Origin: Piromyces finnis finn
Taxonomy: Eukaryota; Fungi; Neocallimastigomycota
Length of the DNA stretch: 64,000 bases
Direction of reading: 5' to 3'
Assembly: GCA_002104945.1 (NCBI GenBank)
Contig: MCFH01000013.1
Location: 372,001 to 436,000, forward strand
Each line of letters starts with the position of its first letter. Position 1 is the stretch's first letter. The notes under the pieces were generated by a model. It saw only the letters and a list, made by a program, of their open reading frames with translations. It ran no database searches and was not told the DNA's origin. This document shows, piece after piece, positions 8,110 through 32,769 of the stretch. Position numbers and translations under genes: made by a program.

Positions 8110-11100
8110 TCTAGTAATTTTAATTAAAGTAAGAAAGCCACTATTATACTAAAGTATAATAATTGTATTTGACTTCCAATGGGACACCGAGCCAAAGACC
8201 AAAATTTTATCATGGGACAAAATTATGATCTCCATTGGTTGCGCTGGCCCTCCTGGCCTGTCTTACTGTTTCTTCAGCATTGACGCTCTTGGATGTTGCT
8301 TCAAACCTTTTGAACATTGACCATTGCTGGCCAATAGCAAAAGGCATGATTTTGGTTAGAAGTTCCGCGGTTACCGTCAAGAATGGTGTTCCTTCATTAG
8401 TACCAGATTGAATCTGACGCTTACAAAGTTCTTTCCATTCCCTTGAATTGTAATTAATATTGTTAAAACTTCTTCCCCCAAGAAGGAATTTAAATATTTT
8501 ACTGCACACACTAGAATAATCATACACATTAATATTCACCGGATTATTAGAACTATTACTATCATTAACTAAATTACTATCTAAATTAGAATTATTATCT
8601 TCACTATTGCTATCATTACTAATATTATTATTTCTATTACTACTATTGTAATTATTACTATTGTTATTATTACTATTGTTACTATTACTATTACTGTTAT
8701 TGCTATCTCTACTGATATTAACATTTTCATTATTATTGATAGGACTATTGGAATTACGTTGACTGAAAAAATTTAATAGCTGGACTATGGAATCATAATG
8801 TTTAATACGGATATCTCTAAATGTTGGACAATCTAATAACCAATGTTTAATACTTTGATCTCCACACTTGCAACATGGACAGTAGTTAGGACAAACTGGA
8901 TCAACAAATTTAGCAGCTTTGGCAACTCTAGCATCCAACTTATATCCGCTTCTTGCTTTCAATAGCCAGTAGAAGCCATAGGCAAACTCTGGGTACTCAT
9001 AACATAATTTAATAAAATCTTTAGTTTCAATAAATTTATTATCATCATAATATTGCGCTTTGATTGAATTCCCTTTGAGATCTTTCCAATAAAAGTTTTT
9101 AACTGCTTTAACATCTCCATGCTTCTTTAGTTTTTTATCAAGTGTCCTACTTGATTTGCACCACGTGGATTTTCTAAATTTAGGAATGTAATTGACAAGG
9201 TGTGAGATAATACAATTTGAGTTTTTCCATTTGTTAAAACATCTAACCTGAGCTAACGCACATTTGGCTGACAATGGAGGAATATTCAAATCTTTTGAAA
9301 TAGAGTATAAAGATATAAACGATACAGCTTTATGAACTCCGGCAACCCATCGTATTCCTTTGTTAACATGCTTCTGAGCAATCCTAGACCTAGCTTTGTT
9401 GGATCCAAGTAATGGTGCAAAGTATGAAACTCTGCTAATCACTTGAGAGTTAAGTACTAGTTTTTTGAAAGGAATAGGAATATTAGGATTTCTTAAGAAT
9501 TTACTGACTGAGAAAAGTCCTTTCAAAACCTTGTTATTAAGAACTTTAATTACTGGTTTAAGGGACAAATTACAAATTCTTATCAAATGGAACACCAAGA
9601 TAAGTATAACAATCAGTAGTTGGAATGGGTTGTCCTGCTAAGTAAAATGTTGGATCTCTCTTGTTCTGATTTTCTATTGATTCAGGACGAATCACCATCG
9701 TTGAACATTTCTGGATACCAAATTCCATTTCATTATACAATGCCCATTCATTAACTCTTCTTAGCATCTTTTTTAAGCATCCTCTTGTTGGAGCACAAAT
9801 AACTATATCATCTGCAAAAAGTCCACCACAGCATCGAGTGTCACCTAAACTGACTCCGAGATCTTCGCACTCTCTAAATATATCATTAATAAAGAGATTA
9901 AAGAGAATAGGAGAAAGAGGGCATCCTTGACGGACTCCTTTCTTCACATCAAAAGATTTCGAGAATTGTCCATCTAATTTGACATTAGCCTTAGATGTTA
10001 AATATAAATTTTTGATGAATTGTAAACTCTTACCTCGGATTCCTAAACAATCTAATTTATGGAGAATATTACCGATTGGGACTGAATCGTATGCTTTCCT
10101 GAGATCTAAAAAGGCCAAATATGTCTCTTTATTATCTAATTGACGTCTACGGCATATTTCTTGGATTGAAATGAAAAGACTGATACTTTCTTCCTTTTTT
10201 CGAAAACCAAATTGTTCAGGTCTAATGAAATTATTCTTTAGACCATATTCTGAAATTCTAGTGGTGACAATTTTGGAAATCAACTTAATACCATTATTGA
10301 TAAGTGATATACCTCGATAGTTATCACAATCTGTCAAATCTCCCTTCTTAGGAATAGAAACAATACTGGATTCATTCCAAGAGCTGGGGAAATCTCCATC
10401 CCAAATACGGTTGAATAATTTAAGAATAAAATTTAACCCATAAGCATCATTATCTGAAGTGGTATTACCGGAAGAATTATTATCTGTAGCATTATTAGAA
10501 TCATTACTTGATGGAATTAATGCTTTGTAAAATTCAATTGGAATACCATCTGGACCTGATGCTTTATAATTTGGAGTAGAGAGGATAGCTGACTTGACTT
10601 CATCAATACTAATATCTTGGTTGATATCCCATTCATCAAGCATAGGAAGTGAAAAACGTTTATTCATTGGTTCTTCATACCAATGCTCCAAATCAAGACT
10701 TACACCACTCGGATCTGATGCAAGCTTTTCGAAATGATCATGCCACACTTCAAGTTGTTCTTCCGTAGCAACAACTAATTCTCCATTTTTATTTTTAATT
10801 GGTTGAGCAATAAAGAAAGAATCTTTTCCAATTTTTGCAGTTTTCTTGATCCATTTCCAGGCCTTCTTAGGATTATGACTCTTCATATACTCACATCCTG
10901 TTTTAATCCAATGAAGATATTCTTGTTTCCTAAATTCATTACATCTTTTGTGGATGTAATCAATGAGCTTACGGTAGATTTTAATTCTTTTAATAAATTC
11001 ATCTATATCATAAATTCTTTCTTTTTTAAATCTCTTATACAACTTCATTTTGATTTTTTGGAGATTAAAAATTTGTTGTGAAATATGAAATGAAGACTTA

Positions 11101-11654
11101 ATAACATTATTTGCTGAGGTAATACTGAACTCGTCTGCAATTGAAAAAGCAGTTGAAGTAAACTCTTTGGAAAGTTCATCTGTAGAAACATTAGGATCGT
11201 TGAATTTTGCTAAAAGTATTTGGAATTTATTATAACTGAGAATAGATTCCTTTTCCTCAATACATTTTACTCTATTCCATTTCAGAATTTTCTTAGGAAC
11301 ATTAAAGTCATTAGAAAAATCTTCCATAGGAATAATTTTACCATTAATAAGAAGTGGCTTATGGTCTGATACAGGATAAAAATTATTTATAAATGATCCT
11401 GAGTGAATAAGATCTTTCATCTTCGAATTGATAAGAGCATGGTCAATGTCGGAAGATTGATCACCTCGAGTCCAAGAGATAGTCGACCCTCTAAGCGGAA
11501 GAATTTCCCAATCTCCTAATCCATTAGTTGATAACCAGTTGGATAATTTTACTTTAGACATATTAAAATCACCAACAAGAAAGCCAATACCATCACTTTC
11601 ATGTGTTACAATATTGAATGATATATTATTGTTATCATCATCATTTAATGTTTC
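8110..11654 (-). mobile_element. Non-LTR retrotransposon (LINE): partial APE endonuclease, reverse transcriptase and C-terminal CCHC zinc-binding region; 5'-incomplete, frameshifted
   Basis: The frame is open to 11654 and holds APE motifs GDFN, IDHAL and SDHKPL. RT motifs: NYRGISL, QFGFR, FLDLRKAYDSV, GVRQGCPLSPILFNLFI, FADD, YLG. C-terminal CPCCKCGDQSIKHWLLDC. GC is higher than the flanks. The outer boundaries are approximate. Confidence 0.93.
8210..11561 (-). pseudogene. LINE ORF2 split into two frames (9570-11561 and 8210-9598) by a 7-bp duplication
   Basis: ACAAATT-ACAAATT at 9565-9578. Removing one copy restores ...YLGVPFDKNLSLKPVIKVL... and one 1,114-aa ORF counted from the Met at 11561. 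Confidence 0.88.
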
Positions 11655-16909: not shown

Positions 16910-17721
16910 ATTATATATATATTTTGTAAAGAATAAATTCAATTATTTTTTTTCTTTCCTTATTTCCAAAAATATAATATCTATTTTTTTTTATTATTAT
17001 TTTATCGGTAATTTCAAATTATAACAGTTGCTTCTCGTCAAATATATTTCCAATAATTTTAATTAAAATAAATTTCTTTAGGTATTCTATAGAATTGAAT
17101 AATGTATATTCAATTTAATTAGACTTTAATGACTATAAATATAATAACTTTTTTTTTTTTAAAAAAAATTAATATTAATACTTTTTTAATATTTTAATAT
17201 GTTTTTTTTTTCTTAACTTTTTTTCTTAAATAAATATTATAAACTTATAAGAGAAATTTAAATAATTTCAAAATTTCTATTTGAAATTTCTTCTATTTCA
17301 TAAAAAAAAAATTAAATAAAATTATTAAAACTATTTTATATATATATTATTAAGATTAATTAATTAGAATAAAAATTTTTGAATAAATTTACATTTGAAA
17401 TATTTTTTTATATAAAATAAAACCTACTTTTATCTATAAAAAAAGATAAAAGAAAAAATAAAATAAAATAAAAAATAATAAAATAAATAATAAAATTTAA
17501 AAATAAGTAGCAATAAAAATCATAATAAAATATAGACATTTATATAAAGTTTAAAAACAAAACAAATTTATTTTAAGAATAAAAACGAAAACAAAACACA
17601 ATTCATTATTCTATTATATGTTCCATTCAATATTATTATTTTATTTACAAACATTAAAATTTCAATAATCTTAATAATTGTACTATTTAATTTGTTAAGA
17701 ATATAATAATAAAAGAGAAAA
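16910..17721. promoter_or_regulatory. Probable bidirectional promoter region between ORC5 and GRH1
   Basis: The start codons are head-to-head ~810 bp apart with only AT-rich non-coding sequence between them. No specific site was identified. Confidence 0.45.
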
Positions 17722-20700
17722 ATGTAATTAATAATATATTGCTCGATAAAATATAACATCTTAATTATAATTGAAATAATACAATAAAAATAAAAAAATA
17801 ATTAACTAAAAATTAAAAAACATTTATCTAGGGGACAAAATGCTTCTTCTGAGCAAAAACAAGGTTACCATGTATTAAAGGTAATGATTAACAAAGAATT
17901 TTGGCTTTACTTAATGAAGAAAAGATTTTTTTTTTTTTATTTAAATAGTTTCACTATTTTATTTTATGCATAACAATAAATTATATGCTACAATTTAAAT
18001 AAATCATAAAATTAAAATGTATAATATATATAAAAGGTTGTACCAGGAAGTCCAGCTGCAAGAGCCGGTTTGATTCCATTTTTTGATTATATTGTTGCTG
18101 TTAATAAAACATTATTGGTAAAACAAATTTAAAAATATTAATTTATATATTTATATTAATTCACTAGTAATAACAACAACAATAATTTTTAATCATTTCG
18201 TGCTTATATATTTGATTATTTTCTTTTCAAAATACATAGGATGAAGAAGCCAATTCATTAATTAAAGTTATCAGTGATAATGTCAATAATAAACTTTCTT
18301 TTTATGTTTATAGTAGTAAAACAAATACTTATAGAAATGTGAAATTTGAATATCCTATAGAAAAATGGACCAATGCAGGTGAAGATGGATGGCTAGGTAT
18401 GTAAAAAGAAATATTGCAAATTTTTTATTAATTATTTATTATATTATTAAAGTTTATTCAATCATAAAGGTTTTTCTGTAAGATATTGTTCATATGACGG
18501 TGCGGCTGACCATTTCTGGCATGTTCTTGTAAATACATTTTAAAATAATTTAAAATAAACAAAATTGAAAATAATTACAATTTTTAATAAAAAAAATATT
18601 AATAATATTCATCATGCTTAAACATTTTAAATAAAGGCTGTTGTTAAAGATTATCCAGCATTTATGGCAGGAATTCAACCAAAAACTGATTATATTATTG
18701 GTTCACCAAATCATGTTTTGAAGACGCAATCTGATTTATATGATTTATTTGATAAATATGTTAATAAACCTCTTCATCTCTATGTTTATAGTACTCTTAC
18801 AAATAAGTGTAGAGAGGTAAAGAATATATATGTTATGATATATATATATTTTTACAATCAACTATTATGTGTTGGTTAAACATTTTATTAAATACTTTTT
18901 CTATTAAAATTTCTTAATAGATATTTGTTGTACCAACCACAAAGAATGGAGAAGGATGGTTTGTATCATATTATAATTGTATTATATATATAAATTCGTA
19001 AATATTAATATATTTTATTATTATTGTTTAATATAAAGTATTGGATGTACTTTTAGTTATGGGTAACTATTTAATTAGATCCTAGTAACATATATAAATA
19101 TAGAGTATAAAATAAAAGTTGGATTATAGCATTTTGCATATTAATTTAATATAATAATAAAATATAGAGATAGAATTTCAGTAAAGGATATTTTAATGAA
19201 TAAAGAACAACAAGAAAAATCCCAAATAGATCAACAAGATCAACAAAATTTAATATCAACAAGTAACTCAAATAACGTAATGGATCAAGATAGTATAAAT
19301 GCACCATCACCACAAAATGAACCAATAGATTTTGATTTTTCAAATTTTGCTGATATTTCTATAGATGAAGTTAAAAATACTGCCAATAAAGTACAAGAAA
19401 ATAAAAAAATAGAAACAGAAACACTAGATCATAAAGAAAACGATGAATTAAAGTCAACTCTTGACATAGAATCAAAAAATGATATAAAAATCACCCTTAA
19501 TAATAATAATTATATGAATACTATGCCTTCTCCATATATTCAATCTCTTGATAGTTCAATTCAAACTCTCTTCCCAAAAAAAACTGTTAGTAATAATAAT
19601 AATAATAATAATGATAATAACATTAATAGAATACCTGAATCTCCAGAAGAGCAAATAAACTATGACATTGATTTAAATGAGCTAAGTCGAATAAGTCATG
19701 ATGATGCCAATTTATCAGCATTAGATAAATTAAGTGAGTTTGAAGCAGCTGCAAAAGATAATAGTTTCAGTTTAAGACCATCTTCTTCAAAATTAAACTT
19801 ACCAAATCATAAAAATGAAGAAAAAAAGAAATCCTCACCTTTACAAGCATCTTTAATAAATGAAAATAAGGAAGAAGGTATAATAAAATCATGATTTATA
19901 GAAAAATTTTATTCAATAAATATAAGTTGTTAATTCCACTTTTTTTTTTTTCTTTTCATAAAAATTTTATAATATATATATTGTTTTATATAATTTAAAT
20001 ATAAATAAGAAGATAATAAAAAAGAATCAAAATTAGAATCAAATGATAATATAGATGATTATATTAAAACCCCAGAACAATTTTTAAATGAACTTTTTAT
20101 AAAAGAATTTAATTCAACTCCATCTCAAAATAATATTGATATGAGTTTCTTCTCAAATAATAATGAAAATAGTGAAATTAATATAACTGGTAATGAATTA
20201 AACTTTGAATTTAATTCAAATGAAAGAAATGACGAATTTGATCATATCTTAAATTCTGAGCCAAATTTAAATAATACTATTGATTTAGATACAAAAAACA
20301 ATAAGAGACAACAAACTATAGAATTAGAAAATACCACAGTTGATCCATTTTTTGAAAAGGGTTCAACTATGAATATACCATCAAATAATACTGATATTCC
20401 AGTGAACTCTAAAATTCCTTTAGATAATATAGATAATGGAATAGATAATAATGTTATTCAATCTATTTCAGTGATAGATGATAATAATAAAAGCACAATT
20501 TCATTAGATGAGAACGAACAAAATACATTAAATTCATTTCCAGTTAGTGTTGAAGTTCAAAATGTAGTTGACCCATTCCCAATCAATACCGCAAATCAAG
20601 ATGTAGTTGATCCATTCCCAGTAAATACCGAAGCTCAAAATGTAGTTGATCCATTCCCAGTAAATACTGAAGGTCAAAGCACTATAGATCCATTCCCAAT

Positions 20701-23041
20701 AAACACTGAAAATCAAAATGTAATTGACCCATTTCCAGTAAACACTGAAAATCAAAATGTAATTGACCCATTTCCAGTAAACACTGAAAATCAAAATGTA
20801 ATGGATCCATTCCCAGTAAACATTGAAACTCAAAACGTAGCTGATCCATTCTCAATAAACACCGAAACTCAAAATGTAGTTGACCCATTTCCAATCAATA
20901 CCGCAAATCAAGATGTAGTTGATCCATTCCCAGTAAACACTGAAAATCAAAATGTAGTTGACTCATTCCCAGCCAATACCGCAAATCAAGATGTAGTTGA
21001 TCCATTCCCAATAAACACCGAAACTCAAAATGTAGTTGATCCATTCCCAATCAACTCCGAAACTCAAAAAGTAGTTGACCTATTCCCAGTAAATACTGAA
21101 GATCAAAGCACTATAGATCCATTCCCAGTCAATACCGCAAATCAAAATGTAGTTGACCTATTCCCAGTAAATACTGAAGATCAAAGCATTATAGATCCAT
21201 TCCCAGTAAATACCGAAACTCAAAATGTAGCTGACTCATTCCCAGTCAATACCGCAAATCAAAATGTAGTTGATCCATTCTCAATCAATTCCGAAGCTCA
21301 AAATGTAATTGACCCATTTCCAATCAATTCCGAAGTTCAAAAAGCAGTTGACCCATTCCCAGTAAACACTGAAAATCAAAATGTAGTTGATCCATTCCCA
21401 ATAAACACCGAAACTCAAAACGTAGCTGGTCCATTCCCAATTAACACTGAAAATCAAAATATAGTTGACTCATTCCCAGTCAATACCGCAAATCAAGATG
21501 TAGTTGATCCATTCCCAATTAACACTGAAAGTCAAAATGTAGTTGACTCATTCCCAGTCAATACCGCAAATCAAGATGTAGTTGATCCATTCCCAATTAA
21601 CACTGAAAATCAAAATGTAGTTGACTCATTCCAAGTCAATACCGCAAATCAAGATGTAGTTGATCCATTCCCAATAAACACTGAAAATCAAAATGTAGTT
21701 AATCCATTCCCAGTCAATTCTGAAAATCAAAATGTAATGGACCCATTTCCAATAAATAATAATATAAATAATTTAAATCATTTTCCAATTAACAATGAAT
21801 TAAATAATAATGCAATTAATCAACAAATACTGTTAGATTCAAAGCAACAATTAAATGAAAATATTACCAAAAATGAAGAAAATATAAAAGAAAAAGCTGA
21901 TGAGTCAAATGAAACAGAAAATAAGAAAACAAGTAATAGAATAAGTTTTATCCATGATGATTTATTTAAAACTTCAAATAATAAAAACGAATTAAATTTC
22001 TTTGATCAAATGAGTAATAATAGCTGGGATTTTAATGAATCATTTACAAATAATAATTCAGGATGGGACTTTAATCCAGCTGATATGCCAACTATTAATA
22101 ATAGTATTCAAGGCACACCTATTTCATCTCCATCAAAAAACAATAAGAATAATATTTCCTCTATAGATATGATCCAACAATCTTCACAATCAACACCATT
22201 AAAGAAAGAACAAAATGGTTGGAATTTTGATATGAGTAATCAATCTACTCCAATGTCAGTTAATTCTTCATCAAGTAAAAATGAGCAAAGTGGATGGAAT
22301 TTCAATATACCTTCCATTAATAACTCAAACGCATCACCATCAATATCTAATAATTTAAATCAGAATGAATGGAATTTCAATAATATCAATAATCAAAATG
22401 AATTTTCGAATTCAAGTCCATCACAAAATAACGAACAAAGTGGTTGGAACTTTAATATACCATCTGTATCTACTCTAAATTCCACACTCCCTCAAAAACA
22501 AGAATCAGTGGCAACTGTTAATCAAAATGATTGGAACTTTACTGAAGATGTAGTTCCAAATAAACAAATGTCTCCAAAACCTATATCACCAAAAATAAAT
22601 TTACCTGATTCATCATTCATACAATCTAACTCAGAAGTAGAAAGCAAAGAAGAAAAAAATACAACTTTTGTAGGAACTCAAAATAAAAATAATTGGGATT
22701 TTGGTAATTCTATTTCATTTGATACTAATGATCAAAATACCCAAGATTTCAGTAATGTAATAAGTCATTCAAACCCATCCAATCAAAATCAAAATGATAG
22801 AAGCGCAAGTAACTCGTTATTTGGCTCACAAAAAAATCAAGGTGAATTTAATCCTATTGCTTCATCTATTCAATATTCTTCAAATGATTTTAATCAAAAT
22901 GGATGGAATATAACTACTACAACCACTAATAATGAACCTGAAGGTTGGATATTTTCTGATACTACAAATCAAGGAGGTTGGGATTTCACTAAAGAAATCA
23001 ATAATAATACAAACAATAGTCAAGGTGGATGGAATTTTTAA
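17722..23041 (+). CDS. GRH1: GRASP55/65 (Grh1) Golgi protein with a very long acidic repeat-rich tail; 10 exons, ~1,443 aa
   Basis: Exons: 17722-17723, 17832-17880, 18037-18117, 18240-18396, 18470-18528, 18637-18816, 18921-18958, 19039-19062, 19168-19877, 20010-23041. All GT-AG, phases consistent. MGQNASSEQKQGYHVLKVVPGSPAARAGLIPFFDYIV...WHVL...AGIQPKTDYIIGS...LYVYS...GEGCIGCTFSYG is the GRASP double-PDZ domain. Confidence is high for the GRASP domain and moderate for the in-frame join to the tail. Confidence 0.85.
20531..21760 (+). repeat. Coding tandem repeat, 39 bp / 13 aa, ~32 units (consensus DPFPVNTENQNVV)
   Basis: Seen directly in DNA and protein. Unit 0 starts at 20531 and unit 31 at 21740 (31x39). 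Late units alternate as a 78-bp higher-order repeat. Confidence 0.97.
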
Positions 23042-25712: not shown

Positions 25713-27217
25713 ATGACAGAGCAACCAATACAACATATAGAAGTTAAAAATAAGAGAAGAAGAAGAAAATTAAATAGAAATCGTAAAGAAAATTCTAATG
25801 AGGATTCAGTACAATTATTAGTTAAAGATGAAACACTTGATATACCTTCAATTGAAGGTAATAACTCGCTTTCAAATTTTGATTTAAACCCATTGGTAAA
25901 TATTTATATTCCTAAATTAAAGAGTAAAAGAAATAATAAATTATTAATTTTAGTGATTTATTAATAATATTGTTATTATTTAAATTTCTTAATATATAAT
26001 AATTTATACATTTGCTAAAATAACACAATTAACTTATTTTTAATAGAAAAAAGAAAAAGAATTTATGTTAAAAGTATTTTTTAATCTTTGGACAGTGCTA
26101 TTAGGAGCGATTTTTATTGCAACTTTTGTTATTAGTACATATCATGATAGTAAAATAGATCCATCTAATGTAAAAACTACACTTATTTTATTTTCAATAG
26201 ATGGTTTTAGAAGAGAATATTTGGATCGTAAAAAAACACCAACCTTGGCTACTATTGCCGAGTATGGTGTTTCTGCAGAATATATGATTTCTCAGTTTCC
26301 AACTGAAACATTCCCTAATCATTATTCCATTATTACAGGACTTTTTCCAGAATCCCATGGCATTGTATCTAATGTTTTTTATGATCCGAAATTGAATGCT
26401 ACCTTTGATTATACTGATCCTAATTGTGCTAAGGATCCTGATGGTAAATGGTTCAAAGGAGAACCAGTATGTAGAAATATTTCTAAATTTTAAATATACA
26501 TATAAATACAATAAAGTATTAAGTATTAAATTTATTTTCATAAATTGTTTAATGTTAATTTTTATTAGTTATGGGTAACCGCAAATAAAAATGGCCATAA
26601 AACTGCTAGTCTTATGTGGTAAATTACATAAAATTAAAAAATTAAAATTTAAAATAATTAAAAATTATAATATAATTAATATTTATAAATGTTATATGTC
26701 ATATATTTTTAAAGGGTTGGATCCGAAACTATGATTAATGGTGAAAAACCAAATTATGTTGTACCATTTGGTGAAATGGATTTAGATGAAAAGGTGGATG
26801 CAATTTTTGAATGGCTTCAATTACCAGCTAAAGATAGACCCTCATTTATTTCTGTTTATATTCCAGATTTAGATACTGTAGGTCATGAAAAAGGGCCTTC
26901 ATCTAATGATATCACCAGAAAATTGGTTGAAATTGATCAAATGTTTGCAAAATTTATATCTAAATTGGAAGATAGTGAATTAATAAATTTCATTGATATT
27001 ATGGTGGTTTGTATTCTTTATCCTTTACTATTATTATTTTTATAATATAATATATATAATAAAATTTTTATCGAAATTATCATATTATCATATTAAATTT
27101 TTTTTTTTTTTTAGGTTAGCGATCATGGTATGTCTGATACTGAACCATCAAAAGCATTATTTATTGATGATTATCTTGATATGAAAAAAGTGGATGTTTT
27201 TGATACTTATCCAAGTA

Positions 27218-29698: not shown

Positions 29699-32600
29699 AT
29701 GTTATCATCTAAAAAAAACAGTTTTGAAAAATTAAAAAATGATCCTGATACAATAATGAATATTTATAACCCAACCAATGAATCTAATATACCTTCGTCT
29801 GTTAGTTTTAATAATAAAACAAATATACCATTACCACCTATAAAATCAAAAATTATTATTGAAAGTGAAAAAGAAAATACTACAAAAATAATTGATGCGA
29901 GTACTTTTAAGAATGAACGAAAAAAAAAAGAGGAGGAAAGAAAAAAAGTTATGGAAATATATAAGCAAATATTTGAACAGAGAAATAATAAAAATAAAAA
30001 TAAAAATAATGACTCATTAGAATTGATTGGATTTGAAAAAGACATAGATAGTGATAAGTATAAAACAATACAACATTTTTTTAATGGATCTATTTGTAAA
30101 CATTGTATTAAACATTTAGAAGAATCATATAAACATTGTATAGGAAAGGTTAAGTTTGTCTTTCCATCATTTAATGAAATTAATGAAGAAGAAGATGGAG
30201 AATCAATTGCTGGTACACCAGATGTATATATATATGATGAAGTAAAAAAAACTTCATTATATCGTCCTGATATTCTTAAAAGTAAACAACAGAAAATCAA
30301 AGCAGATCAACAAATTGTTTATGATAAAAAAAACCAACAAATAAAAGAAGGTGGTCAAAGTTTTAGTATAGCAGGAAGATTTCATTTAGATATTACAAGA
30401 AAAGGTGTAGAAGAACCTTTTCCGGGAATACTTTTTCATGATTATGAAAATCAAAAAGATAAAGAAATAGAAAAGTTAAATCGTGTAATAATTAATTTAA
30501 AAGATCGTCTTAAAGATGAAATGGAATATACAAAACAATGTAATAATACTTTAGAAAAAATGAAAAAATCTTGTCTTTTTGTAGATACCTGGAAGAATTT
30601 AGAAGAAGCACGGTTAAAAGATGATGTTCGACAAATCAGAACACAATTAACAGGGTTTATTTCTTATACCTTTAGTCAAGAAAGAGAAAAACATGATGTA
30701 TGTAGAAAATGAAAGAGAAATAATAATATTGTATTAACATAAAATAATACTATATATGTTTTGCAATAAATAATTAAAATAATATATAATATTATAATAT
30801 ATTATATGAAATATAATATGATTTTTAATAAAATATATATACATTATCCGTTATTTTTATTTATTATATATTATATTAATATTATATAATTTTTTATATA
30901 ATTTAAATTATTCGGTAGTTGAGAGCAAAGAATGAAAAATTAAAGTATGAAATGGATTCCAAAGAAAAAGAAATTATTAGAGTAAATGAGAATTACGATA
31001 AAGCACAAAGCCGGTATAATGAATTAACACAAAAATATGTTGAATTATGTAGTTCTGTAAAGGAATTGAAAGTTCAAGCTAAAAAAGGAAGTCAGGAAGT
31101 TCAAGCTCAAAATGAAGTGTTAAATGATTCATTGAAAAAACTATCTACAGAATGTAAAGTAGCACAGGCTCAATTAGCAGAAGAAATAAGGAAATCAAAA
31201 AGTTTAGATTTTGAATTATTAACAATTACCACCCAATATAATAATCAAAATAAAGAAGTAATTCGATTAAAAAATGTTATTCAGGATTATATTAAAAAAA
31301 ATAAAGATATTAATATAAATTATCAAAATTCTTTAAATGAAATTGCACTTTTAAAAAATACAATTGTACAATTAAATACAAAAATTGAACAAACGGAAAC
31401 TCAAATGCTCCAGGAAAGAAAAAAGGCTACAATAGCAGCCTCTGATTTATCAAAGCTTTATGAGGATTGTAAAAAGGAAAAAGAAATTATTCAATTGAGA
31501 ATGGAGGAGTACCTATCTTCACTGGAAAAAGTAACACTAGATTATGGTAAAATAATGACTGATAAATGTCGATTAGAGGACGAAATTACCTATCTAAAAA
31601 CTAAGCATAAAAACATATTATCTTCAAAAATAAAAATAATTGAGGATTTAGAAAAGAAAGAAAGTAATTTACGTGCTAAATTGAATGATTACACAAAAGA
31701 AAATACACATTTAAAAGAAGTAGAAAATGAACTTCGCTATCAATTGGATAAAGGAAATTTATCTATTAATGTATTAAAGTTTGATTTAAATCAGGCTCAA
31801 TCCACTCTAGAAGATATAAAAACAAAATTAAGTGATAAAATATCTAAATTAGTAAACACCAATAATGAATTACAAGAAAATAATAGGATTTTAAATTCCA
31901 AGGTATTAAATATGAGAAAAAAAATTGAGGATGATGAAAAATATATGGAGATTTTAAAGAAGAAAGTGACAGAATTTGAAGAAAAGAACGAAATTAAAAA
32001 TGCAATTTATAACACGCATAAAATAGAAACATATATAGAAGAAAAGATTGCCGAAACAGAAGTGGCAAATATAATGTGTAGCAAAAAAATTGAAAATCTT
32101 AATGAAACAATAGAAGAAAAAGAACAGTGTATACAAAAATCAGAAAAGCATATAATAAAATTAGAGGAAGAATGCCAAAAATTAAAAGAAAAAATAATAG
32201 AAATTAAAGAGACACCTGTTATCACTACTGAGATAAAGAAAGAAATGGAAGAAAAAATTGAGAAACGTGATGATGAAATTCAAATTTTGAAAACTGAAAT
32301 TGAAGAGAAAAATGAAAAGACTAACACTCTTAATATTCAATTTAATAACTATAAGGTGAATATGGAACACGAGGTTGAATTCCAAAAGAATGAAAATGCC
32401 AGACTTCAAAATCGTATTAATGATCTAAATAATGAAGTAGAAGAATCTCATAAAATTCTTGATAAAGTTTATGAGAGTTATGAAAACTCAAAGACGACGA
32501 TGGAGCATCTACTCTTAAATAATGAATTATTAAAAGAAGAATTAATTAACAAACAAAAACAACTATTTAATAAAAATAATGAATTTGAAGCATTTAATAA

Positions 32601-32769
32601 TTCAAACAAATTATTAGAACGTAACTATTATAACTTAATAAAACTTAATAAAAAAGGTCATAAAACTATTTATAATGATTTATTAGCGATAAAAACTCAA
32701 TTAAAACAAGAAGCTAATAGAATTGATAATGTTATTAATAGTTACTCTGTATGTACACCAACAGCATAA
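29699..32769 (+). CDS. Uncharacterised long coiled-coil protein, ~949 aa (2 exons; intron 30698-30918)
   Basis: Two long ORFs joined by a phase-0 GT-AG intron. The second exon is continuous E/K/L-rich heptad-like sequence. No family recognised. Confidence 0.8.

Follow-up and report, generated by a model that had tools for sequence, protein, structure and literature searches.

Within a 64,000-nt stretch of the genome of Piromyces finnis, an anaerobic gut fungus of the Neocallimastigomycota (contig MCFH01000013.1 of assembly GCA_002104945.1, forward-strand positions 372,001 to 436,000; hereafter the window, whose own numbering is used throughout), positions 17722-23041 of the + strand contain a gene whose product is, judged from its sequence, a GRASP-family protein with a normal double-PDZ domain, followed by an acidic tail of ~1,230 amino acids (aa) that carries two long motif arrays; the protein is about four times as long as GRASPs usually are. 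It is a single expressed gene, with one mRNA joining the GRASP domain to the tail, and it represents a lineage-specific and lineage-restricted variant of the GRASP family that is both real and expressed. An initial annotation, made from the letters of the window alone, had proposed that the two parts form one protein; its structural interpretation is right, and the tether function that it suggested appears to be a reasonable one.

The gene model that we assembled from the sequence has ten exons and one open frame of 1,443 codons, with predicted protein lengths of 1,442 aa if the last intron ends at its major acceptor and 1,443 aa if it ends at the minor one. Exon 1 supplies just two coding bases, the AT of the start codon (17722-17723), and intron 1 (108 nt, 17724-17831) cuts that codon (AT|gtaatt...ag|G) before exon 2 (17832-17880), which encodes the N-terminus MGQNASSEQKQGYHVLK. 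Exons 3-5 (18037-18117, 18240-18396, 18470-18528) and exons 6-8 (18637-18816, 18921-18958, 19039-19062) follow, and then exon 9 (19168-19877), in which the GRASP domain is completed (G|DRISVKDIL) and a predicted helix leads into the proximal acidic tail. Exon 10 begins at 20013 (major) or 20010 (minor) and runs to 23041, with the stop codon at 23039-23041; its frame is open for more than 1,000 codons although the surrounding DNA is mostly A+T. The 5' untranslated region extends at least from 17578, where the longest transcript contig begins, to 17721, and in-frame stops lie directly 5' of the ATG. A 16-codon upstream open reading frame (ORF; MFHSILLFYLQTLKFQ) is present at 17618-17668 within this leader.

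As a test of transcription, contigs from three public runs (X1, X2, and X3, from two studies) were placed on positions 17500-20556, and the resulting RNA support covers the region from 17578 to ~50 nt into the repeat array, where the X1 contig ends. Of the words sampled from 17600-20556, each of the three runs contains about 55%, which is near the expectation for exon-only RNA. The X1 contig (2,040 nt, 17578-20556) has nine of nine GT..AG introns removed with no mismatches, an X3 contig (1,366 nt) covers 17657-19877 and is spliced likewise without mismatch, and an X2 contig from the second study (883 nt) has the last intron removed. Every joint, including those between exons 3 and 8, falls on a GT..AG boundary matching the gene model, except for a refinement of the last acceptor, and the split start codon is confirmed by the joint 17723/17832 in both X1 and X3. 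The runs are only presumed to be RNA, but the intron-free contigs and their canonical boundaries indicate that the source is spliced mRNA. The 19062/19168 junction between GRASP domain and tail, as originally predicted, is spliced in both X1 and X3, and GRASP and tail are thus read in one mRNA. The other predicted junction, 19877/20010, is used but is the minor form; the last intron ends in a NAGNAG tandem acceptor (aagAAGAAGat, 20007-20013), and contigs of all three runs skip 135 nt (19877/20013), with a skip of 132 nt seen once, in X3. Both forms keep the frame, and a single Glu distinguishes them.

The GRASP portion of the protein is unremarkable. Its N-terminus, MGQNAS, fits the N-myristoylation pattern G-{EDRKHPFYW}-x(2)-[STAGCN]-{P} and so matches, at the sequence level, the N-terminal membrane anchor that marks the GRASP family. 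The double-PDZ domain spans residues ~11-197, of which exons 3-8 (18037..19062) encode ~18-197, and Pfam family PF04495 (GRASP55_65) matches exons 3, 4, and 6 individually (22-23 bits each for exons 3 and 4, and 53.9 bits for exon 6 alone). In the full-length ortholog L002, described below, PF04495 is matched in two stretches at 156 bits against a cut-off of 27.7, as expected of a GRASP-family member, and PDB searches yield GRASP55 and GRASP65 with E values of 1e-38 to 1e-47 (GRASP55, 6.5e-47 over residues 11-198). An AlphaFold2 (AF2) model of the ortholog has predicted local distance difference test (pLDDT) scores of 86-97 over most of the GRASP domain, and above 90 for most of residues 11-200. 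The intron 8 junction, ...GCTFSYG|DRISVKDIL, falls at the conserved end of the GRASP domain (alignment consensus ...GYGYLHRIP).

Three related loci, L001, L002, and L003, share the architecture of a GRASP domain joined to a long tail. With the 1,009-aa tail as query, a word-indexed protein search gave a single relative (P0001, 757 aa, 38% identity), which is an exon-10 fragment of an ortholog encoded on L001, a 3.9-kb metagenome contig with exon layout and phases as in the window, the SYG|DRISVKDIL junction kept, and a GRASP exon 6 that is 85% identical. Independently of the tail, a GRASP exon was used to scan Joint Genome Institute (JGI) metagenome contigs, and L002 was the one locus obtained. 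L002 is a 5.7-kb intronless contig with one 1,702-aa ORF running from MGQNAS to ...NQNGWNF-stop; its ATG lies seven codons 3' of an in-frame stop, and MGQNAS is encoded uninterrupted. The lack of introns in a single ORF indicates that L002 is a cDNA-type contig of an ortholog that carries the whole fusion. L003, from a Logan assembly, includes exon 9 together with the beginning of exon 10, in the same layout as the window. Between the window and L002, the GRASP domain is ~93% identical and the tail ~40%.

The tail is acidic and Asn/Ser-rich (19% Asn, 10% Ser, 7% Pro; net charge ~-120), and does not resemble the short Ser/Pro-rich C-terminal regulatory region that is a feature of the GRASP family, although tail length and composition vary across the family and do not decide membership. 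It can be divided into a proximal zone A, a repeat array (zone B), and a Trp-containing zone C, with net charges of -42, -57, and -22, respectively, and 18-22% Asn. Zone A (residues ~201-616) contains four blocks that are near-identical in all relatives: NTMPSPYIQSLDSSIQTLFPKK (19517-19582) and NLSALDKLSEFEAAAKDNSFSLRPSSSKLNLP (19709-19804), both placed by three-way alignment, together with YIKTPEQFLNELFIKEFNSTPSQNNIDM and RNDEFDHIL. The block YIKTPEQFLNELFIKEFNSTPSQNNIDMSFF (20060..20152), a predicted short amphipathic helix, is near-identical in L001, L002, and L003, and another block that alignment shows to be conserved, SNRISFIHDDLFK...ELNFFDQM (21932..22012), separates the array from the W zone. 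In all, five nonrepetitive tail blocks are kept in position while the spacers between them diverge. The DFDFSNF-type motif that the initial annotation had singled out is present in the window as IDFDFSNF (residues 250-257, 19325-19348), but the aligned relatives lack it, with IKFEQSNM in L002 and IDLEIMNA in L001.

The AF2 model was run with residues 1-560 of the ortholog and a 60-sequence alignment, so that the modeled tail comprises residues 201-560. Beyond a helix at 202-220 (pLDDT 75-81), scores over ~230-560 are near or below 50, except in a short helix at 444-457 (the PEQFLNELFLKEF block, pLDDT ~70). This agrees with a proximal tail that is predicted to be disordered, as had been anticipated, with a few short recognition elements, and a fold also seems unlikely for the array and the W zone from their composition. 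Pfam searches with the tail exons gave no match. A faint match to the Spt5 C-terminal domain (E 0.016, below the cut-off) lies on a ~20-residue repeat of L002's own, and was disregarded. That repeat, which ends in NTPIFN and occurs in five to six copies at ~1530-1635 of L002, is absent from the window; L002 also has its own 28-residue GWNF-containing repeat (EPSGWNFNQPAQSPSMNNQNVTASSLTK), with four copies at residues 1215-1312. Comparison of these sequences suggests that the tail continues to grow by separate duplications in each lineage.

Zone B is an array of 31 units with the consensus QNVVDPFPVNTEN (residues 617-1019, 20558..21766), each exactly 13 residues long with no insertions or deletions, and Tandem Repeats Finder reports it as a 39-bp unit in 30.8 copies (20557-21758, 79% matches). 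Twenty-three units contain DPF and one contains NPF, with DSF, DLF, or GPF in the remainder, and the whole array has only two basic residues. Columns Q1, F7, and N10 are invariant, and those that appear constrained are D5, F7, P8, N10, and T11. When the units are compared, synonymous differences exceed nonsynonymous ones at D5 (14 to 2), F7 (5 to 0), and N10 (14 to 0), and columns 2, 4, 9, 12, and 13 have 9-15 nonsynonymous differences each, although the units are copies of one another and these counts are not of independent events. Even so, the pattern among columns is what motif constraint would give. Between 21455 and 21700 the units alternate in pairs (…DSFPVNTAN / QDVVDPFPINTEN), and this 78-bp higher-order period points to recent duplication of double units.

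The relatives keep the 13-residue period but not the DPF. The L002 array has 28 units with the consensus NNTLNPFPVNTET, 16 with NPF and one with DPF, and those of L001 and L003 contain LNPFP, NQFP, and NSFP units; the orthologous arrays read LNPFPVNTE. What is common to the window and all three relatives is the period and the core PFP[VI]NT(E). The array of ~32 DPF units described initially is thus an array of 31 units whose DPF is not conserved, and the presence of NPF-type units in the relatives weakens a reading of it as DPF ligands of the AP-2-ear or FCHo type. Of the two motifs that the initial annotation had proposed to look for in orthologs, W-x-F is conserved, and DPF is replaced by NPF within PFP[VI]NT.

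The W zone (zone C; 22025..23038) has the consensus [EQ]-x-[SGN]-G-W-[ND]-F. Eleven of the 12 tail Trp residues are in W-x-F motifs, 10 of them W[ND]F, compared with 0.7 W-x-F expected by chance and a maximum of 4-5 among 5,000 shuffles; Gly precedes Trp in 8 of the 12, against 0.2 expected. The protein ends GGWNF-stop, and the claim that W-x-F repeats continue to the last residue is borne out. In L002 the tail has 20 Trp residues, with 15 W[ND]F motifs (~1 W-x-F expected) and one W-D-W, and Gly precedes Trp in 15 of 20; L001 has the same motifs. Across the window, L001, and L002 the W-x-F motifs can be aligned but the intervening spacers cannot, and GWNF stands at or close to the C-terminus of each of the three proteins. 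An in-frame TAA lies within the W zone of L001 (3672-3674 of that contig), with GWNF, GWDF, and the terminal GWNF kept in frame downstream; possible causes are a mistake in the assembly, polymorphism between strains, or a truncation of very recent date. Matches to a delta-COP-type pattern (Trp, then Trp or Phe within a few residues) number 11 in the window and 15 in L002, with an acidic context that is only partial. Two other candidate motif classes were rejected, the AP-1/GGA gamma-ear motifs (aromatic-G-[PDE]-aromatic), whose order and spacing do not fit, and the LC3-interacting region motifs (W-x-x-[LIV]), with a count of zero for W..[LIV] in the tail.

This combination appears to be confined to these relatives. 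A HMMER search with residues 1-560 of L002 against 1.84 billion cluster representatives returned 1,311 relatives, the best 150 of which were inspected, leaving exon-fragment matches from this lineage itself out of account. None of these best 150 has more than two [DN]PF or more than one W-x-F, and none shares a tail block. They are mostly 200-700 aa long, and the best GRASP-domain matches are only 43-45% identical; the best named ones are from early-diverging fungi, namely, Acaulospora (310 aa), Phascolomyces (315 aa), the chytrid Clydaea (341 aa), and Nowakowskiella (677 aa). Three long representatives (785-1,057 aa) were considered as long-tailed GRASPs and set aside, two being gene-model fusions with a neighboring SMU1 WD40 gene (in the nematodes Trichuris and Trichinella) and the third an unnamed firefly protein; none of these has the motifs. 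In word-indexed searches among candidates of ~940-2,980 aa, the 1,702-aa ortholog's GRASP region found no match, and therefore no other long GRASP sharing words with it, and the W zone alone found none among candidates of 233-740 aa. When the W zone was used for a feature search of the ESM Atlas, the only hits were subthreshold bacterial hypothetical proteins, which were discounted. Neither the 5.8-billion word-indexed set nor the 1.84 billion cluster representatives yielded a full-length copy, and the protein is apparently absent from, or split in, those collections, possibly because a split start codon is easily overlooked by gene finders. The literature searched contains nothing joining GRASP or Grh1 with NPF motifs, and mentions GRASP together with Neocallimastigomycota in one paper, incidentally. 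The supposition that the architecture had not been described therefore holds both for the GRASP relatives in these protein collections and for that literature.

We consider it probable that the protein acts as a multivalent docking scaffold or tether for trafficking machinery, a proposal that draws on tail motifs being kept across relatives while the sequence between them diverges. The N-terminal Gly would be myristoylated, and the GRASP domain would hold the protein on early-Golgi or endoplasmic reticulum-exit membranes, as in other GRASPs; yeast Grh1 is at the cis-Golgi, binds Sec23/24, and helps COPII vesicle tethering and consumption (PMC2063951). The tail could then reach tens of nanometers into the cytosol as a polyanionic thread, as estimated from polymer scaling, and its ~31 [DN]PFP[VI]NT and ~12 GW[ND]F units (~43 putative weak docking sites) would provide low-affinity, high-avidity ligands for folded trafficking domains. 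Pockets of the EH-domain or appendage type may accept the [DN]PF units; an individual NPF-EH contact is weak, and multiplicity adds strength (PMC8927860). EHD1 is reported to contact NPF, DPF, and GPF peptides. The W-x-F units, in a mildly acidic and disordered context that includes the C-terminus, may fit the class of Trp motifs that bind delta-COP's mu-homology domain (MHD). Trp motifs in acidic surroundings dock tethering and ArfGAP factors on this domain (ELM LIG_deltaCOP1_diTrp_1; PMC7145657), including the Dsl1 tether (PMC7145657; PMC5166505). The protein would in this way capture coated vesicles, or coat proteins and their accessories, or concentrate them at its membrane. By analogy with these systems, a specific COPI/delta-COP reading of the W-x-F array is possible but doubtful. 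We are similarly tentative about a fuller version, in which the gut-fungal GRASP would be a long-reach coat-capturing tether, with W-x-F docking many delta-COP MHDs in the role that the Dsl1 lasso has in yeast and [DN]PFP[VI]NT recruiting EH or appendage factors. According to a review, that lasso is missing from the Dsl1 homologs of aquatic fungi (PMC4868844). If the fuller version is true, COPI and perhaps also COPII or clathrin-accessory components would be brought together by a single myristoylated Golgi protein, helping these cellulolytic fungi to sustain their very heavy secretion.

Several observations weigh against a docking role, or at least against these partners. The single-residue gap of W-x-F lies at the short end of the range for delta-COP motifs, W-x(1-6)-[WF], that Suckling et al. 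are said to have given in 2015. The residue before Pro in the array differs, being Asp in the window and Asn in the relatives; the DP[FW] core of AP-2 alpha/beta2 appendage ligands is not conserved across the orthologs, and the NPF core of class I EH-domain ligands, present in L001, L002, and L003, occurs once in the window compared with 23 DPF. Judged from these sequences, neither an AP-2 ear (DPF) nor an EH domain (NPF) fits all members, and the core that is recognized may instead be PFP[VI]N, as yet undescribed as a motif. In the array, the synonymous excess carries less weight for want of independence among units, and proteins of anaerobic fungi are in general rich in Asn-rich low-complexity expansions. 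Finally, the contigs are compatible with a minor mRNA that may retain intron 8, which would place a TAA (19064-19066) right after the GRASP domain.

A different role for the same tail would be as stickers and spacers, self-associating into a condensate or matrix around Golgi or unconventional-secretion compartments rather than docking partner domains. The array does place a Phe every 13 residues and is followed by Trp/Phe pairs, within polar, low-complexity spacers rich in Asn, Ser, and Thr, and Grh1 is linked to condensation and amyloid-like behavior in other reports (10.1101/2023.12.19.572348, PMC13427742, 10.1101/254144). However, the tail's strong negative charge (~-120) and the near absence of basic residues from the array disfavor self-coacervation, and the conservation extends to P8, N10, T11, and G-W-[ND]-F, which is more typical of docking motifs. 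We regard self-association as unlikely.

We also think it improbable that the tail is a largely neutral low-complexity expansion of a normally short C-terminal region, generated by replication slippage and unequal crossing-over in a mostly A+T genome and with no motif-specific function. The tandem 39-bp structure with 79% matches is what such expansion could leave behind, array length and secondary repeats vary among the relatives (the four 28-residue copies and the five to six NTPIFN copies of L002), and the switch from D to N across whole arrays suggests concerted evolution. Against this, the frame has stayed open for more than 1,200 codons in four organisms, with an excess of synonymous differences at the motif columns, and the W-x-F motifs and the five nonrepetitive blocks are conserved in position, down to the C-terminal GWNF, between spacers that have diverged.

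It is very improbable that the W zone binds Argonaute as an "Ago hook" like those of GW182, Tas3, or NRPE1, and so tethers RNA-silencing complexes to Golgi or endomembranes. Its Gly-Trp pairs (8 of 12 in the window and 15 of 20 in L002) in a disordered, Ser/Asn/Gly-rich context do recall such hooks, which have several GW/WG dipeptides in a disordered region and no other fixed residues, but neither a Phe at +2 nor [ND] at +1 is known as an Ago-hook feature; their near invariance here points to a different pocket geometry, and the locus holds no other pointer to RNA silencing. That GRASP and tail are two genes or transcripts wrongly joined, as the TAA exposed by intron 8 retention and the breaking of orthologous loci into separate ORFs by prokaryote-style gene callers might suggest, is effectively refuted by the mismatch-free 19062/19168 splice within single X1 and X3 contigs, the uninterrupted ORF of L002, the conserved exon phases and SYG|DRISVKDIL junction of L001, and the same exon 9-10 layout in L003.

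Elsewhere in the window, three other regions were noted. Two long ORFs (663 and 462 aa) on the - strand at 8210-11561 resemble, as read by eye, a non-long-terminal-repeat retrotransposon of the LINE type, the first being reverse-transcriptase- and endonuclease-like and the second having a Cys-rich C-terminal part. On the + strand, an exon at 26065-26493 resembles an ectonucleotide pyrophosphatase/phosphodiesterase (…FSIDGFRREYL…TFPNHYSIITG…), and two long Lys/Glu-rich ORFs at 29699-32769 are coiled-coil-like.

The roles of GRASPs are debated, with Golgi stacking, tethering, and the organization of unconventional secretion all proposed, and their C-terminal regions are usually seen as short regulatory appendages. 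Here is a natural GRASP whose tail is four to five times as large as its folded domain and consists almost wholly of two conserved kinds of short linear motif, both of which resemble coat- or adaptor-binding motifs. With docking as the preferred reading, it offers a concrete and testable case for a GRASP acting by multivalent capture of trafficking machinery, and provides two candidate motifs, PFP[VI]NT and GW[ND]F, whose receptors can be searched for. It also illustrates that public protein sets may lack genes of this kind.

Among known systems, the closest in overall plan are GRASP65 and GRASP55 (GORASP1/2) and Grh1, which likewise have an N-terminal anchor (here predicted from a myristoylation-type MGxxxS, as in GRASP65 and GRASP55), two tandem GRASP-type PDZ domains, and a nonglobular C-terminal region. 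The anchor of GRASP65 and GRASP55 is a myristoylated Gly2, and that of yeast Grh1 is an acetylated amphipathic helix. Golgi localization and the binding of a golgin (GM130, golgin-45, or Bug1) are further traits of the family, and its nearest annotated fungal members total 310-341 aa. Their C-terminal regions are short and Ser/Pro-rich, whereas the one described here is an Asn/Ser/Asp-rich, strongly acidic tail with its two arrays of motifs. The W zone is reminiscent of the Trp motifs of the Dsl1 lasso and of Gcs1/ArfGAP1, as its Trp-based pairs of aromatic residues (W-x-F, with one W-x-W in L002) are situated in a mildly acidic and presumably disordered part of what would be a trafficking factor at the membrane, and one copy stands at the extreme C-terminus, as in Gcs1. 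It differs in having 11-15 copies rather than 1-3, carried on a GRASP and not on a tethering complex or ArfGAP, with Asn/Ser/Gly-rich flanks in which acidic residues are scattered. The array, in turn, resembles the endocytic accessory proteins Eps15 and epsin, which have many [DN]PF copies in long, disordered, acidic regions where weak contacts add up (PMC8927860). Those proteins are soluble scaffolds with EH, ENTH, or UIM domains, whereas this one would be anchored through its GRASP portion, and its array is further set apart by a D/N position that varies between species, a core that extends to PFP[VI]NT, and a strict 13-residue spacing.

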